This document shows positions 1,627 through 9,082 of a DNA stretch of 64,000 nt, one piece after another. The DNA is taken from IMG/VR virus record IMGVR_UViG_3300017917_001123, positions 1 to 64,000 of that record. One strand, written 5' to 3'. How positions within the stretch are numbered: position 1 is the stretch's first letter; each line of letters starts with the position of its first letter. A program made the position numbers and the translations under genes. Below the pieces are notes generated by a model. That model made no database searches, was not told where the DNA came from, and was given only the letters and a program-made list of their open reading frames with translations.

Positions 1627-2511
1627 ATGATTATTGTAACAGGCGCAGGCGGTTTTATTGGTAGTGTCATGGTTGGTTATCTCAACAGCATTGGCATTAC
1701 TGATATTATTGCCGTTGACGATATGCCACATCCGGAACAATATAAGAACTTAGTTGGAAAGAAGTTTCAACTAATTTCTACAAGCGAAATGGAATCGTTG
1801 CTGTCGTACCAACCTGGAAAGATCCAAGGAGTAATCCATCTGGGAGCCAACAGTAATACATTAGCTAATGATTGGGCCAGTGTGTATAAGACTAATGTTC
1901 TAAGTACTCGACAGTGGGCAAACTTGGCAAGACGTGACCATATTCCTTTTGTGTTTGCAAGTTCTGCGGCTATCTACGGAAATGGAAACGGGCCTCTGAA
2001 TCAGTATGCGTTTAGTAAACAAGTAAGCGAAAGCGAACTAGATTGGGGTGTTGTAAATCTACGCTTCTTCAACGTATATGGTCCTAACGAATATCATAAA
2101 GGTCGAATGGCAAGTACTATCTATAACTGGCATAGCCAAATATTAGAAACAGGTAGTATTAAGATCTTTAAAGACAGTGACCAATACTATAGAGATTTTA
2201 TCTACGTTGAAGATGTGTGTCGTGCTTGCTGGCATTTCATTGAAAACTTCCAGCCCGGTACATACGATTTAGGCACAGGACGAAGTGAAAGTTTTGAGCG
2301 TGTTGCTCGTGAGTTGGTAAAACACTATGACGAAGAAGTCTACTTTGACTATATTCCAATGCCGGGAGATTTAGCCAAACAGTATCAAACAGATACAAAA
2401 GCAGACATAAAAGCATTGACAAAAGCAGGCTTTGACACTACAATATGTAGAACAGTTAGCGAAGGAATAGAAGATTACGTTCCCTTCCTAAAAGAAGGAC
2501 GGCGTCTTTGA
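1627..2511 (+). CDS. gmhD: ADP-L-glycero-D-manno-heptose 6-epimerase-like NAD-dependent epimerase
   Basis: MIIVTGAGGFIGS, ASSAAIYG, YAFSK, LRFFNVYGPNEYHKGRMAS; AGGAG RBS before ATG 1627. Confidence 0.88.
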   Translation: MIIVTGAGGFIGSVMVGYLNSIGITDIIAVDDMPHPEQYKNLVGKKFQLISTSEMESLLSYQPGKIQGVIHLGANSNTLANDWASVYKTNVLSTRQWANLARRDHIPFVFASSAAIYGNGNGPLNQYAFSKQVSESELDWGVVNLRFFNVYGPNEYHKGRMASTIYNWHSQILETGSIKIFKDSDQYYRDFIYVEDVCRACWHFIENFQPGTYDLGTGRSESFERVARELVKHYDEEVYFDYIPMPGDLAKQYQTDTKADIKALTKAGFDTTICRTVSEGIEDYVPFLKEGRRL

Positions 2512-2716
2512 ACAACCCGGGATCCCATACCCGTTAGGAAATGGGGGTGTAGGCGGCTACCAAAATCCGCCGGGTACGCTAGGACTCGACCTTCATTCCC
2601 TGTTGGGGGAGCGTGAAAACAGCCTAGGGTGAGGAACACTACCTTTCCAGAAGAATAAATGTGTGGACGGAGTAACTGCCCAGTCTAGGGCTTCTGTGGT
2701 GGAAGTAGCTAGACAC
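2512..2716 (+). ncRNA. Structured RNA module A (multi-hairpin, possible kissing loop)
   Basis: ACCCGG/CCGGGT, CTAGG/CCTAG, GTCTAG/CTAGAC stems; loop CACTA complementary to loop TGGTG. Confidence 0.55.
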
Positions 2717-2717
2717 T

Positions 2718-2824
2718 TTTAACGAGCAGATTGACGAGATTTTAACGCCACGGCAAGGGCAACATTATCAAGTCGGTTTGCCGACCGAGGGGCTCTATAA
2801 TTTCCCTTCAGTCTGCTCATTAAA
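2718..2824 (+). ncRNA. Structured RNA module B (~105-nt closed rod)
   Basis: GAGCAGATTGA(2724-34)/TCAGTCTGCTC(2808-18), internal GTCGG-TTTG-CCGAC. Confidence 0.6.
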
Positions 2825-2940
2825 GGTCTTTGAAGTTTGACTACACTGGAGAACGCGAGTTAGGTACTAAGTCGACTAACTACCGAAAGCGCCAGGAAGA
2901 TACGGAGTCAGACAGTTTGGTTCGAGTCCAACTAAGACCC
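2825..2940 (+). ncRNA. tRNA-mimic RNA (acceptor stem + T arm, no D arm, large insert)
   Basis: GGTCTT/AAGACC termini; TTGG-TTCGAGT-CCAA T arm; GTTTGACT/AGTCAGAC helix. Confidence 0.65.
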
Positions 2941-2948
2941 TCGATTTT

Positions 2949-2972
2949 GAAAACTTGTTTCGGCAAGTTTTC
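2949..2972 (+). other. 10-bp UUCG tetraloop hairpin separating RNA modules
   Basis: GAAAACTTGT-TTCG-GCAAGTTTTC. Confidence 0.75.
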
Positions 2973-3214
2973 CGGTAGGGTAGCGGAGATGAGGAATAGC
3001 ACACAAGTAATCGTCTTGAAAACGAATACTTGACTAAATGGCTTGATTAGCCTCCGTAACTCAGTGCTCCGGGACTATTAGCATAATAGCGTGTTCATTG
3101 TTCCCCGGCAATATTGAGTTCTCTGTTTGTTGTAGGTTGTAAGCAAAAGTTTAATCGCTGGAGCACTTGTATCTTGCATTTTGTCCAGCTATTCGCTTGC
3201 TGTCTATCTTACCG
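2973..3214 (+). ncRNA. Structured RNA module D (~240 nt, ends paired)
   Basis: CGGTAGGGTAG/CTATCTTACCG and GAATAGC/GCTATTC closing stems followed by TTTTT. Confidence 0.6.
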
Positions 3215-3273
3215 TTTTTATTTGAAATATAGGCAAAAGACTGTATAATTGTTTTTGAAAAGGAAAAGGCAAA

Positions 3274-3843
3274 ATGAAAGTAACTCTCCGCAAAGCATCC
3301 GCTCTCCAGAACGCAATCCAGGAAGCAATCCGCAACATTGAAGTTAAGCTGGCAATTCAGCTTAACGAATTCGAAGACCCTGCTGTGGTCCTCGACAAAG
3401 CAACCTCAGAGGCTGTCATCAACGACCAACGTCGTGCTAGCTTGACTGCTTGCTTGTACGACATCCGTAGTTTGGTCGGAACTGCCAATGCCGCAAGTGG
3501 CATTAACGACCGCTTGGCAAAGGCCGCTTACATCGATAAGCGTTTGGGACAATTGGCCGGAATGGTCAAGGACGAAGTTCTCCGTGAGAACGTTTCCGTC
3601 ATCCAAGGCAAGCTAGAAAAGCTTCGTACCGCAGAGCCAAAGACTCGCATCTACGGATACGGCGACACAGTAGCTTCCGGCGTTCTTGTTGCCGAGCATG
3701 TTGCCAAGTATAAGGCAGATGTGCTTGAACTTAAGAAGGCCAAGCAAAAGCTCAACGACGAGATTCTTGAGCTTAACGTTCGGACAGAAATCGATCTCCC
3801 AACAGAGGTTGAAATGGTCCTGAACCAAGAAGGCCTAGTGTAA
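3274..3843 (+). CDS. Hypothetical alpha-helical/coiled-coil protein
   Basis: 189-aa ORF, AAGG RBS, TATAAT at 3244. Confidence 0.8.
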   Translation: MKVTLRKASALQNAIQEAIRNIEVKLAIQLNEFEDPAVVLDKATSEAVINDQRRASLTACLYDIRSLVGTANAASGINDRLAKAAYIDKRLGQLAGMVKDEVLRENVSVIQGKLEKLRTAEPKTRIYGYGDTVASGVLVAEHVAKYKADVLELKKAKQKLNDEILELNVRTEIDLPTEVEMVLNQEGLV

Positions 3844-4733: not shown

Positions 4734-5354
4734 TTATAGCTTTTTAATAGCGATTATAATATCGTCTTCTCTACCTTCAGCAATCCGCTTGCCGTAATAG
4801 GTATCGATCTCAAATTTCTCACCAAGCCCGTGTAAATGATTTTCTAAATGCGGAATGAAGTTCTCGGCTGTTTGAGTATTCACTACGTCTTCAATAAAGT
4901 AGACGCCACCCCTGGCTAAACGTGGCCAGTAGTTTTGAAAGGTCTGCCATTGGCTATTTGCCCTATGGTCGCCATCGTCAATAATGAAGTCCATTGTTTC
5001 TTCGCCAAACTGTGCTGCCAATGCTGGATCAAAAGCACTACAATTCCAATATAAACTAATTCGCTGGTCTTGCTCAATTTCCTCTTGGAAAGGTCTTCTC
5101 ACGGCGTAACCTCCAGCAATATCAAAACTGTAGTAATCAAAATCAGTAAAGTACTTGCTCCAAAGATATGCGCTACCGCCAATGCTAATTCCAATTTCTA
5201 ACATACGAATTTCTTCTGTACGCTTTGGTTCGAAATATTTTTCATAGAATGGCAAATAGCTGTGTCCAGAATCTGCGCTCTTGTCGGTAAAATCTAAACT
5301 GGTTTCACCGTATTGTGCTTTAAGTTCTTCGTTGATTTCGTGTAATGTCTTCAT
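4734..5354 (-). CDS. Class I SAM-dependent methyltransferase
   Basis: LEIGISIGGS, DFIIDDGDH, GGVYFIED; start moved to ATG 5354 (TAAATA upstream; longer ORF overlaps a tRNA). Confidence 0.85.
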   Translation of the reverse strand: MKTLHEINEELKAQYGETSLDFTDKSADSGHSYLPFYEKYFEPKRTEEIRMLEIGISIGGSAYLWSKYFTDFDYYSFDIAGGYAVRRPFQEEIEQDQRISLYWNCSAFDPALAAQFGEETMDFIIDDGDHRANSQWQTFQNYWPRLARGGVYFIEDVVNTQTAENFIPHLENHLHGLGEKFEIDTYYGKRIAEGREDDIIIAIKKL

Positions 5355-5381
5355 GCGAATATTTACTGGAGAGTCTAATAC

Positions 5382-5410
5382 TTGATCTTTTTCTTGAGTT
5401 TTCGTATAAT
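5382..5410 (+). promoter_or_regulatory. sigma70-type promoter for aberrant tRNA
   Basis: TTGATC-17-TATAAT, 7 nt before tRNA. Confidence 0.65.
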
Positions 5411-5417
5411 TAACTAT

Positions 5418-5518
5418 GCGGCTGTGAGCAAATAGGCAAAGCTCTCCACCCTTTGGGTCGAGGTCGGACACTGACTTAGTCAACGTCTTTGGAGGTTCAA
5501 GCCCTCCCAGCCGTACCA
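5418..5518 (+). tRNA. Non-canonical type II (Leu-like body) tRNA, collapsed TTT anticodon loop
   Basis: GCGGCTG/CAGCCGT-A-CCA; Leu-like D loop; T arm GGAGG-TTCAAGC-CCTCC; loop CC-TTT-GG; ~30-nt variable arm. Confidence 0.75.
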
Positions 5519-5561
5519 AATTCTTGATTTATAGATTTTTATATCTGTAAATATCCGAGAC

Positions 5562-7075: not shown

Positions 7076-7149
7076 TCTTGTAATACAATACGCAAGGATT
7101 TATAATATATAAATACATTGTTAATGGTGCCAACAGGGCTGTTAACAAA

Positions 7150-7166
7150 CTTGCTTAATAAGGAGA
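7150..7166 (+). promoter_or_regulatory. ROSE-like RNA thermometer hairpin over dnaK SD
   Basis: CTTGCTT-AAT-AAGGAG, bulged G opposite SD. Confidence 0.55.
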
Positions 7167-7171
7167 AAAAT

Positions 7172-9082
7172 ATGTCAAAAATTATAGGTATTGACCTAGG
7201 TACAACAAACTCTTGCGTGGCTATCATCGATGGCCCAAATGCTAAAGTTATCGAAAACTCAGAAGGCGCAAGAACAACCCCTTCAATTATTGCTTACACT
7301 AACGAAGAAGTGCTCGTTGGCGCAACTGCCAAACGACAAGCAGTAACAAATCCAAAAAATACATTGTACGCCGTTAAGCGTCTTATTGGACGTAAGTTCA
7401 GTGAGAAAGAAGTACAAAAAGACATCGACTTGATGCCTTACAAAATTATTCAAGCAGACAACGGTGATGCTTGGGTAGAAGCAAACGGTCAAAAACTTGC
7501 TCCGCCACAAATTAGTGCTGAGGTTCTTCGCAAGATGAAAAAGACCGCAGAGGATTTTTTAGGTGAAGAAGTTACAAAAGCAGTTATTACAGTTCCAGCA
7601 TACTTTAACGACTCACAAAGACAGGCTACAAAGGACGCTGGTAAGATCGCCGGCTTGGAAGTACTCCGTATTATTAACGAGCCTACTGCGGCAGCTCTTG
7701 CTTATGGTGTTGATAAAGCTGATGGTAAAGACAGGAAAGTTGCTGTTTACGATCTTGGTGGTGGTACATTCGACATTAGCATCATTGAAATCGCGAATGT
7801 CGACGGTGATAAGCAGATTGAAGTTCTAAGCACCAACGGTGACACGTTCTTAGGCGGTGAAGACTTTGACCAACGCATCATGGACTATCTAGTAGCAGAG
7901 TTCAAAAAGGACAACGGCGTTGACCTAAAGAGTGATGTTCTTGCTCTTCAGCGTCTAAAAGAAGCCGCAGAAAAGGCAAAGATCGAATTGTCTAGCTCTG
8001 CTAGCACAGATGTTAACTTGCCTTACATTACTGCCGACGCAAGTGGTCCTAAGCACATGAACGTTAAGATCACTCGTGCTAAGTTTGAAAGTTTAGTTGA
8101 GGATCTAGTAGAACGCAGTCTAGAGCCATGCCGCATTGCACTAAAAGACGCAGGTCTAAGTGCCAGCGACATCGACGAAGTTATCCTAGTCGGTGGCCAG
8201 ACTCGTATGCCTAAGGTACAAGAAGCAGTTGAGAAGTTGTTTGGCAAGGCACCACGTAAGGATGTTAACCCAGACGAAGCAGTTGCTGTCGGCGCCGCAG
8301 TTCAAGGGCAAGTGTTAGGCGGTGGACGCACTGACGTTCTATTGCTTGACGTTACTCCATTGAGTCTTGGTATCGAGACGCAAGGTGGTGTTATGACTAA
8401 GATGATTAAGAAGAATACTACTATTCCGACTAAGCATAGTCAAACATACAGTACTGCCGAAGACAATCAGCCAGCAGTTACAATTAAAGTCTATCAAGGT
8501 GAACGTGACCTAGTTGCTTATAATAAACTATTGGGCGAGTTTAACTTAGAAGGCATTGATCCTGCTCCACGCGGTATGCCTCAAATTGAAGTTACATTCG
8601 ATATCGACGCAAACGGCATTCTTGACGTCCATGCTAAGGATAAGAAAACTGGCAAGGAAAAGAAAATTACTATCAAAGCAAGTTCTGGTCTAAGTGACGC
8701 AGAAATTGAAAAGATGGTACAGGAAGCCGAAGCCAATGCCGAAGCAGATAAAGAGGCAGTTGCCCTAATTAATCTTCGAAACGAAACCGACGTTCTAATC
8801 CACATGACTGAAAAGTTAATGAAGGAATTGGGCGAAAGCGGTGTTTCGCTAGACGAAGAAGATCAGGCAAAAGAGTCAATCGAAAAAGCCAAAGAAGCTC
8901 TAAAAGGCAACAACAAGTCAACTATTGAAAAAGCTCAAGACGAAGTTAAGGAATGGCACAAGAAGTTCCTACAAAAGTCTCAAGAGCAAAATGAGGCCAA
9001 CAAGCAAGAGTCCGAAATTGACAAGGGACAAAAGCCGGGCTACGAAAATGTAGTTGATGCCGAGTTTACGGAGAAATCTTGA
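7172..9082 (+). CDS. dnaK: Hsp70 chaperone DnaK
   Basis: [26 protein letters not shown]-terminal VDAEF; AAGGAG RBS. Confidence 0.97.

Follow-up and report, generated by a model that had tools for sequence, protein, structure and literature searches.

A conserved tRNA-like RNA of giant phages with an apical loop predicted to pair with a second copy of itself

The tRNA islands of phages harbor several enigmatic RNAs whose functions have resisted decades of work. In bacteriophage T4, species 1 RNA (rnaC) and species 2 RNA (rnaD) are stable small RNAs encoded inside the tRNA cluster, on the tRNA strand and just after a tRNA (T4 record AF158101). GOLLD and ROOL RNAs are encoded in phages and prophages, often near tRNA islands; like OLE, they form homo-oligomers, and their assemblies use symmetric kissing loops, for which palindrome switching within a loop (GGCC to GAUC or AGCU) was used as evolutionary evidence of intermolecular pairing (PMC12286853). 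Mimicry of tRNA is known from other small RNAs. Bacterial Y RNAs of the YrlA type have D-arm and T-arm mimics with D/T tertiary pairs, an acceptor-like stem closed by a loop, and ends that form a Ro60-binding stem carrying the motif GNCGAAN0-1G near the 5′ end, and their genes lie next to rsr, the gene of the Ro60 (TROVE) protein, on the same strand; YrlA of M. smegmatis is cut by RNase P and receives CCA, which shows that such mimics can be handled by tRNA enzymes (PMC4201824). The tRNA-like domain of tmRNA, finally, combines an acceptor stem and a T arm without a D stem with the G3:U70 pair, CCA, an SmpB partner, pseudoknots, and a tag ORF.

A tRNA mimic of another layout is encoded at positions 2825–2940 (plus strand) of the window, that is, the 64,000-nt stretch analyzed here (positions 1–64,000 of IMG/VR record IMGVR_UViG_3300017917_001123). 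The original prediction, made from the sequence alone, described a tRNA mimic with acceptor stem and T arm but no D arm, and a branched domain in place of the anticodon. The observation holds: GGTCTT (2825–2830) pairs with AAGACC (2934–2939), the T loop TTCGAGT is at 2921–2927, an 8-bp helix is formed by GTTTGACT (2835–2842) and AGTCAGAC (2906–2913), CTGG (2846–2849) pairs with CCAG (2892–2895), ACCGAAAG is at 2882–2889, and there is neither an encoded CCA (the tail reads CTCG) nor a tag ORF. The drawing needs correction in three respects, however. The terminal stem is 8 bp long, which leaves a linker of 2 nt, not 4; the stem AGTTAG/CTAACT can be drawn in this copy but is not conserved; and the stems are nested, so that the domain is one arm with internal loops and is not branched.

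Thermodynamically the fold is unremarkable (minimum free energy −28 kcal/mol, z = −0.22), and neither ARAGORN, in default, intron, and low-threshold modes, nor Rfam finds a tRNA at 2825–2940; the intron, low-threshold, mitochondrial, and tmRNA modes of ARAGORN gave only implausible low-score calls, one of them a “tRNA-Val with a 161-nt intron” that reuses the T arm. Comparative data show that the fold is real. In IMG/VR phage contigs 85 homologs were found, 64 of them distinct, and a covariance model finds the copy in the window at E = 2e-25. On 60 distinct homologs, 95.6% of 1731 pair cells are standard pairs, against 34–45% when the 3′ partners are slid by 1–3 columns, and 27 of 31 pairs show compensatory changes; the alignment used for these counts was fitted to the model, which inflates the percentage paired. 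G:U pairs are frequent (20, 23, 27, and 13 sequences at four pairs) and would be A:C on the other strand, which makes the fold strand-specific.

The 5′ strand of the terminal, acceptor-like stem, GGTCTTTG (2825–2832), pairs with CTAAGACC (2932–2939); all 8 pairs show compensatory changes in the family and 99.6% of cells are paired, the T:T mismatch at 2831/2933 being the only one and unique to this copy. A 2-nt linker, AA (2833–2834), takes the position of tRNA nucleotides 8–9 and is 1–2 nt long (AA, A, TA, AG) in 60 members. It is followed by helix H2 (2835–2842 with 2906–2913), in which 5 of 8 pairs have changes on both sides and 98.9% of cells are paired, although the helix is only 5 bp long in the commoner of two subfamilies. 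An unpaired ACA (2843–2845), invariant in 60 of 60 members, leads into H3 (CTGG 2846–2849 with CCAG 2892–2895; 100% paired, 3 of 4 pairs covarying), a bulge AGAA (2850–2853), and H3b (CGC 2854–2856 with GCG 2889–2891; 95% paired, 3 of 3 pairs covarying). The apical hairpin (2863–2884) consists of the stem GGTA (2863–2866) with TACC (2881–2884), in which all 4 pairs covary and which replaces AGTTAG/CTAACT, and a 14-nt loop, CTAAGTCGACTAAC (2867–2880). On the 3′ side of the conserved internal loop, GAAGATACGG (2896–2905), GAAGA is found in 60 of 60 members. The T-arm-like hairpin (2917–2931; stem TTGG with CCAA, a T stem of 4–5 bp) runs without a linker into the 3′ strand of the terminal stem; all 4 stem pairs covary and the loop is TTCRA in 55 of 60 members, but in the commoner subfamily the closing pair is replaced by A:G, which leaves a weakened stem of 2–3 Watson–Crick pairs plus A:G. 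One of two models of the family, R1, matches genuine tRNAs at 18–32 bits, and only through the acceptor and T arm. The flanks of the element pair and covary as well (72% paired), the outermost pair switching from U-A to A-U in 29 versus 21 members, so that the 8-bp core is lengthened in most members to a helix of about 16 bp with a conserved mismatch. TATAAA motifs in these flanks were considered as promoters, but their position would start transcription inside the stem, they pair and covary instead, and a promoter and terminator scan found no site at the element.

A feature absent from the original prediction is the palindrome at the center of the apical loop, which in the window is AGTCGACT (2870–2877, core GTCGAC 2871–2876). 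The loop is 13–17 nt long in the family, and a central palindrome of 6–8 nt is present in 59 of 60 members, in at least 12 different sequences (GTCGAC, TCTAGA, CTGCAG, CCGCGG, ACTAGT, ACCGGT, and others). In the arm, 62 of 64 sequences carry a strict 6-nt palindrome, against a mean of 24.9 and a maximum of 37 in 1000 shuffles, and no second copy of each palindrome that could serve as a different partner was found within the loci. This pattern is the signature of a symmetric kissing-loop homodimer; the same argument, palindrome switching inside a loop, was validated by cryo-EM for OLE and GOLLD (PMC12286853).

The homologs are placed like tRNA genes, always within or at the head of phage tRNA arrays and usually 5–15 nt from neighboring tRNAs; in 43 of 61 loci a tRNA starts within 40 nt downstream (median 14 nt), in 24 a tRNA ends within 15 nt upstream, and all 966 neighboring tRNAs lie on the strand of the element. 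Of these tRNAs, 949 of 966 (98%) end in an encoded CCA, whereas only 1 of 60 elements has ACCA. The copy in the window is atypical: it has the T:T mismatch, an insertion replaces its 5′ flank, and the nearest tRNAs are 2.3 kb upstream and 1.7 kb downstream. It could be a copy on its way out, although it still scores 146 bits with R1 and 119.7 bits with the second model, R2. Upstream of it lies module A (2512–2719, plus strand), a separate conserved structured RNA of about 210 nt (56 near-full-length distinct homologs, no Rfam match), which directly precedes the element (C) in many relatives and abuts it in, for example, loci L034, L051, L077, and L078. Between the two, module B (2720–2824, plus strand), bounded by the inverted repeat TAACGAGCAGA/TCTGCTCATTA, is an insertion specific to this genome and absent from all relatives in which A and C abut; a contig from an RNA library joins 2719 to 2827. 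Short contigs from freshwater RNA libraries also cover the element and give a hint of expression: in one set (X18) a 151-nt contig spans 2827–2937 with 2 differences, and two others (X19 and X20) cover it too, but these contigs are from relatives, are shallow (depth about 2), and could be DNA carry-over. The neighboring gene encodes a helical phage-only protein of 189 aa with no informative family or solved relative.

The family, conserved in the tRNA gene clusters of many uncultured giant freshwater phages, is uncatalogued. Gathering and permissive searches of Rfam 15 (E up to 10) with the window region and with a relative gave nothing but a chance snoRNA hit, an exact 21-mer search of IMG/VR and blastn against 50,697 GenBank phages found no match, and R2 does not hit Brevundimonas phage Bambus. 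A pattern scan of bacterial genomes gave 37 hits, of which only two are real, a 183-kb contig binned with Haliscomenobacter (L284) and a 4.9-kb contig (L290), both probably phage contigs; the conspicuous hits in Hyphomonadaceae are the cspA 5′ UTR with its Shine-Dalgarno sequence. Literature searches found no prior description. Because of local resemblances (ACCCGGCUUAC, CUAGAUAGAA, GGACUCGAC), module A or A plus C was considered as a diverged or permuted RNase P RNA or a tmRNA piece, but no Rfam support appeared at E up to 10 and the order of the motifs was wrong.

The explanation that is more likely right than not is that the element is a gene for a small stable non-coding RNA, of a family found in the tRNA arrays of uncultured aquatic jumbo phages. 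The RNA is a three-way junction of a terminal helix, a T-arm hairpin with a classical T loop stacked coaxially on it, which together reproduce the acceptor/T “top half” of a tRNA, and a single long arm in place of the D arm, anticodon arm, and variable region. In this view it is transcribed with the neighboring tRNAs and set free by the cuts that mature them, RNase P at the 5′ end of the next tRNA and trimming at the 3′ end of the previous one; RNase P may also cut at its own acceptor-like stem, although the extended flank pairing means that this end may stay buried in a longer helix, which would weaken the analogy to RNase P substrates. It would not be aminoacylated, because it has no CCA and no anticodon. 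Two copies would pair tip to tip through the palindrome, and the homodimer would display two tRNA-like heads and two copies of the invariant ACA/GAAGA internal loop. While the fold, the family, its context, the absence of CCA, and the switching palindrome rest on the computation itself, processing, dimerization in vivo, and any function, protein binding included, are inferred from them. The best guess for a role is a bivalent tRNA mimic, acting as decoy or scaffold for a putative tRNA-binding protein of host or phage; the alternative is a small self-assembling RNA of the kind now known from phage tRNA islands. More speculatively, and doubtful on present evidence, this may be a new class of phage RNA, a minimal tRNA-shaped monomer dimerizing tail to tail, whose dimer presents two tRNA top halves at a fixed spacing and could be a bivalent decoy or clamp for a dimeric tRNA-binding enzyme or a tRNA-targeting defense nuclease, or else the smallest member of the self-assembling RNAs of tRNA islands; the free switching of the palindrome would then also keep the RNAs of different co-infecting phages from cross-pairing. 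As the family is small (about 115 nt), abundant in public viromes, and easy to synthesize, and as its palindromic loop gives a clean prediction that can be tested by mutation, it could be a tractable entry point into the questions of why phages place self-associating RNAs among their tRNAs and how tRNA mimicry is used during infection; it also adds to RNA annotation a family that current tRNA finders and Rfam miss.

Among other scenarios, it is possible, though unlikely, that the element is only the 3′ domain of a larger RNA of about 340 nt (A plus C), which would assemble into a higher-order RNA-only particle as a small cousin of GOLLD and ROOL, the tRNA-like part being a structural module and not a mimic. 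A abuts C directly in about a dozen distinct loci, the last hairpin of A is followed at once by the extended terminal helix of C, contigs from RNA libraries bridge the two (for example, record 14 of X20 at depth 39.9), and A is itself highly structured, with 4-nt palindromes (GUAC or UGCA) in its central loop. On the other hand, C is flanked by tRNAs at 2–15 nt with no A in 24 loci, A occurs without C in many loci, the two are separated by 105 nt in the window, no covariation between A and C was found, and no Rfam model of GOLLD or ROOL matches.

Slightly less likely is a cis-acting processing element of the array transcript, whose long terminal helix and tRNA-like fold would only guide cuts by RNase III, RNase P, or RNase E, or stabilize the precursor, the excised piece having no function of its own. 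The constant association with tRNA arrays and the flank pairing, which resembles a processing stem in its conserved mismatch, speak for it. However, such a signal does not need an invariant ACA/GAAGA internal loop, a 35-nt covarying arm, or a palindrome kept palindromic through at least 11 changes, and the phage kept the element although it has almost no tRNA array left (7 tRNA genes, one of them doubtful, plus a tmRNA in 331 kb).

The interpretation originally offered, a circularly permuted Y RNA or a tmRNA-like domain, is supported only in part, namely for the tRNA mimicry with an acceptor-like stem, a genuine T arm, no D arm, and no anticodon. The permuted Y RNA, which would bind a Ro60/Rsr protein through the CGAA segment and tether it to an effector, is not supported and very unlikely. 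Absence of Ro60 from phage and host together with lack of conservation of the CGAA segment had been named beforehand as grounds for rejection; no TROVE/Ro60 gene was found in this 93%-complete genome, and of 5 related large contigs only one has it, a 359.5-kb phage encoding a TROVE protein of 535 aa (118 bits), where the gene lies 20 kb from the element. The motif GNCGAAN0-1G occurs in 3 of 60 members and the CGAA occupies non-homologous places in the two subfamilies; in the window, ACCGAAAG lies in mid-molecule and is half apical-stem strand (TACC, which covaries to CACC, CAGT, and GGGT) and half internal loop. There is no D-arm mimic, and the RNA ends lie at the acceptor end and not at a Ro-binding stem.

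A decaying tRNA pseudogene, or a palindromic site acting at the DNA level such as a protein operator or recombination site, might be suggested by the position among tRNA genes and by the restriction-site-like palindromes, but is excluded, unless the alignment proves to be an artifact, by the covariation, by the non-tRNA motifs invariant across 60 diverged copies, by the strand-specific G:U pairs, and by the free change of the palindrome, which a sequence-specific DNA-binding protein would not tolerate. The genome carries a bona fide two-piece tmRNA (tag ANDEVYALAA) at 320035–320428; no SmpB is encoded by the phage, a partner that the host would supply. Least likely of all is that the element itself is a tmRNA-like domain for ribosome rescue or a chargeable tRNA-like molecule, as there is no G3:U70 (the third pair is U-A in 51 of 60), no CCA, no resume codon or tag in the tmRNA mode of ARAGORN, and no Rfam tmRNA match, and as the phage already has this genuine tmRNA, despite the shared acceptor stem and T arm without a D stem.

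The closest analogs are T4 species 1 RNA and the self-assembling GOLLD and ROOL RNAs of phage tRNA islands. T4 rnaC (139 nt) ends in a canonical T arm, CCGGGTTCGAATCCCGG, followed by an acceptor-like 3′ strand that pairs imperfectly with its 5′ end, and rnaD is followed by rnaC just as module A is followed by C; however, R1 and R2 give no hit in the T4 genome, and rnaC has two further arms and no loop palindrome of the kind seen here, its GAACGUUC lying in a predicted stem. GOLLD and ROOL share the location in phage tRNA islands and the palindrome covariation in support of symmetric kissing loops, here an inferred pairing, but those RNAs are 580–800+ nt long, lack a tRNA-like terminal domain, and form 8- to 14-mer cages, while an RNA of about 115 nt with one palindromic loop would on its own give only a dimer. 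The loop itself resembles the dimerization initiation site (DIS) of HIV-1, where a 6-nt palindrome is likewise centered in a hairpin loop and flanked by unpaired, mostly A residues, and where different natural variants carry different palindromes; the DIS, however, is part of a viral genomic RNA and serves genome dimerization and packaging, whereas here the loop sits on a small tRNA-like RNA.

The genome studied is a 331,570-bp IMG/VR virus record, estimated to be 93% complete, of which the window is the first 64 kb; it behaves as a tailed jumbo phage using the standard genetic code, as ORFs of at least 150 aa cover 89% of the genome under table 11 and TAG ends 15 of the 252. A tRNA with a CUA anticodon (amber suppressor type) is present at 329801-329875, outside the window, but the genome shows no sign of recoding. 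ARAGORN finds eight RNA genes in the genome: five tRNAs in the window, a tRNA-Met, the tRNA with the CUA anticodon and a genuine two-piece (circularly permuted) tmRNA at 320035-320428, with a G:U at the third acceptor pair and the tag ANDEVYALAA. One of the calls in the window, a 101-nt tRNA-Pro(GGG) at 5418-5518, is probably false, as it is not seen by Rfam and overlaps a methyltransferase-like ORF on the opposite strand (4734-5519). The element lies in a 760-nt gap between a gene for an NAD-dependent epimerase (1591-2511) and a phage-specific gene encoding 189 aa (3274-3843). Further along the window, a full-length Hsp70/DnaK homolog (7118-9082; 654 aa, Pfam E = 6e-258) is surrounded by sugar-modifying and 2OG-Fe(II) oxygenase genes.

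The original observation held, in that all the complementarities listed in it are present in the sequence at the stated coordinates. On its own the fold is not special (MFE -28 kcal/mol, z = -0.22), and it is recognized neither by ARAGORN in any mode nor by Rfam 15 at permissive thresholds. Related loci were collected through the two flanking proteins, and blastn comparison showed that the gap is a mosaic of four blocks, namely A (2512-2719), B (2720-2824), C (the element, about 2819-2945) and D (2967-3225); in relatives, C recurs directly after A, without B. A degenerate pattern built from the two most conserved strings retrieved 120 more IMG/VR stretches, and a profile search then gave 85 copies of C, of which 64 are distinct. 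They fall into two subfamilies; the window copy belongs to the rarer one, which has an 8-bp helix H2 and a canonical GGTTCGAnTCC T arm, while the commoner one has a 5-bp H2 and GGATTCAAGCGCC.

The blocks around the element have features of their own. Module A is a second conserved structured RNA of about 210 nt, with 56 near-full-length distinct homologs and no match in Rfam; it opens with an H-type pseudoknot (CGGG..CCCG with CCCAT/ATGGG, covarying), carries 4-nt palindromes (GUAC or UGCA) in its central hairpin loop, and ends in the hairpin GTCTAGGGCTTC...GAAGTAGCTAGAC. Module B is a 105-nt insertion specific to this genome, located exactly at the junction of A and C and bounded by the inverted repeat TAACGAGCAGA / TCTGCTCATTA. 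A different insertion of about 110 nt sits at the same junction in the related locus L036 (1787-1890) and in the second A copy of another relative, L051, which suggests a hot spot for small mobile inserts; in L051 that second copy of A is followed directly by a tmRNA coding piece (about 9010 onward). Module D is a conserved noncoding block of about 250 nt upstream of the 189-aa gene, shared with many relatives and followed by a sigma-70-like promoter (TTGAAA-16-TATAAT) at 3222-3249.

A covariance model (R1) was built from 20 sequences with a hand-drawn structure, and 60 distinct members were realigned to it. On that alignment 95.6% of 1731 pair cells are standard pairs and 27 of 31 pairs change on both sides; no shuffle reaches the observed values, and sliding the partners by 1-3 columns drops pairing to 34-45%. 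As the alignment is fitted to the model, the percentage is somewhat flattering, but the number of pair types per position, up to five, cannot be produced that way. Frequent G:U pairs make the fold specific to the strand that also carries the tRNAs. The consensus comprises an 8-bp terminal stem; a 1-2-nt linker; helix H2, followed by the invariant ACA, helix H3, a 4-5-nt A-rich bulge and the 3-bp H3b; an asymmetric internal loop and a 4-5-bp apical stem with a 13-17-nt loop; the invariant GAAGA on the return strand; and, after 0-4 nt, a T-arm hairpin that runs straight into the 3′ strand of the terminal stem. The AGTTAG/CTAACT pairing of the original prediction is specific to a few copies; the conserved stem is GGTA/TACC (2863-2866 with 2881-2884), which covaries to GGTG/CACC, ACTG/CAGT, TTGC/GCAA, CGGT/ACCG and others, and the arm is therefore unbranched.

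R1 also picks up ordinary tRNAs at 18-32 bits, aligning only their acceptor and T arms and skipping the 63-79 model positions of the arm; the top half is thus quantitatively tRNA-like, and nothing else is. Only 1 of 60 members has ACCA after the stem, while 949 of 966 neighboring tRNAs encode CCA. All 966 tRNAs predicted by ARAGORN in the 64 loci lie on the strand of the element. In 43 of 61 loci a tRNA, most often tRNA-Gly(UCC) or tRNA-Met(CAU), begins within 40 nt downstream (median 14 nt), in 24 loci a tRNA ends within 15 nt upstream, and in about a dozen loci the 210-218 nt upstream are filled by module A; the element therefore occupies a tRNA-gene slot. The 7-8 nt on either side pair with each other in most members (72% of cells, against 23-58% when slid), the outermost pair switching from U-A to A-U in 29 versus 21 members and one position being mismatched in 58 of 60, so that the terminal helix is often about 16 bp long. 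The RNA could be released simply by the cuts that mature its neighbors. It is possible that RNase P also cuts at the base of the 8-bp core; as a precedent, RNase P does cut the closed acceptor-like stem of M. smegmatis YrlA (PMC4201824).

In 59 of 60 aligned members the center of the apical loop is a 6- or 8-nt palindrome, the sequence of which differs between members. The 8-nt forms seen are AGTCGACT, TTCTAGAA and TCTGCAGA, the 6-nt forms are GTCGAC, ATCGAT, CCGCGG, ACTAGT, ACCGGT, AACGTT, GCCGGC, TCTAGA and TCCGGA, and one member has ATCGGT, which is self-complementary with G:U; the four sequences outside that alignment carry GTCGAC, TCATGA, GCCGGC or CCGG. Across the arm, 62 of 64 sequences have a strict hexamer palindrome, against a mean of 24.9 and a maximum of 37 in 1000 shuffles. 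Adjacent bases of one loop cannot pair with each other, so a palindrome maintained through at least 11 changes of sequence points to pairing between two copies; the same reasoning was confirmed by cryo-EM for OLE L9.3 and GOLLD L21a (PMC12286853). No second copy of each palindrome that could serve as a different partner was found nearby. A kissing-loop homodimer is therefore inferred from sequence.

The family is single-copy in this genome. It is absent from GenBank phages at the level of blastn, and from Brevundimonas phage Bambus and T4 by covariance model search; Bambus and its sister phage Marchewka are the only named phages that share the 189-aa gene, at 27% identity. It is present in only two MAG contigs, which look like phage DNA. 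The search pattern also hits the 5′ untranslated region, Shine-Dalgarno sequence and start of cspA in eleven Hyphomonadaceae species (loci L279, L281, L286, L289 and others); these are false positives, although that untranslated region is itself strongly conserved. The source is a pond metagenome, and related sequences occur in freshwater, estuary and wastewater runs. Contigs from four freshwater or river RNA libraries (X18-X21), compared with positions 2400-3400, cover the 3′ part of A at high depth (a 116-nt contig at depth 168 in X18), the most deeply covered piece in these libraries, and the element at low depth (in X18 a 151-nt contig over 2827-2937 with 2 differences, depth 2.1; in X19 and X20 partial coverage). 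One contig joins A directly to C, and one from X21 covers module D. As these contigs are from relatives and have no direction, and as carry-over of DNA is possible, this is only a hint of expression.

The copy in the window keeps every invariant and scores 146 bits with R1, but it is the only member with a mismatch in the terminal stem (T2831:T2933), its 5′ flank has been replaced by block B, and it has no adjacent tRNA; the genome has lost most of the array that relatives carry. Its interior is almost identical to that of the copy in locus L245, while its terminal stem differs from that of L245 by compensated changes, which argues for continued selection.

The element is a real, conserved and uncatalogued phage RNA family. 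The family, its fold and its placement among tRNA genes rest on the comparative analysis itself, whereas the mode of release, dimerization and any function are inferred; the switching palindrome adds a prediction of dimerization that can be tested. Of the possible roles, a bivalent tRNA mimic acting as decoy or scaffold is ranked first, a part of a larger self-assembling A-C RNA second, and a purely cis-acting processing element third. The interpretation in the original prediction is only partly supported: its anatomical insight, the top half of a tRNA without a D arm, is right, but the reading as a Y RNA or a tmRNA-like domain is not supported. No TROVE domain (Ro60) is encoded in this genome. 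Among five large related contigs one, a complete 359.5-kb phage (L275, IMGVR_UViG_3300015606_001334), encodes a 535-aa TROVE/Ro60-like protein (880-2487, - strand; 118 bits), but it lies 20 kb from that phage's copy of the element and no Y RNA recognizable by Rfam lies beside it. The motif that defines YrlA, GNCGAAN0-1G near the 5′ end (PMC4201824), occurs in 3 of 60 members, and the string ACCGAAA lies 3′ of the apical hairpin in one subfamily and 5′ of it in the other, so it is not a homologous element. Against the tmRNA reading, the third stem pair is U-A instead of the G3:U70 pair, there is no tag, and a real tmRNA lies elsewhere in the genome; the phage encodes no SmpB, which the host would supply, and a CCA-adding enzyme and RtcB are lacking from the phage as well.

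The nearest analog in kind is the species 1 RNA of T4 (rnaC), with species 2 (rnaD) beside it; these are stable RNAs encoded after tRNA-Arg in the T4 tRNA cluster, and rnaC has a canonical T arm and an imperfect acceptor stem, but there is no detectable homology to the element. In its inferred behavior the element resembles the homo-oligomeric GOLLD and ROOL RNAs of phage tRNA islands (PMC12286853), but at one-fifth to one-seventh of their size and with a tRNA-like head, while its loop resembles the DIS of HIV-1.
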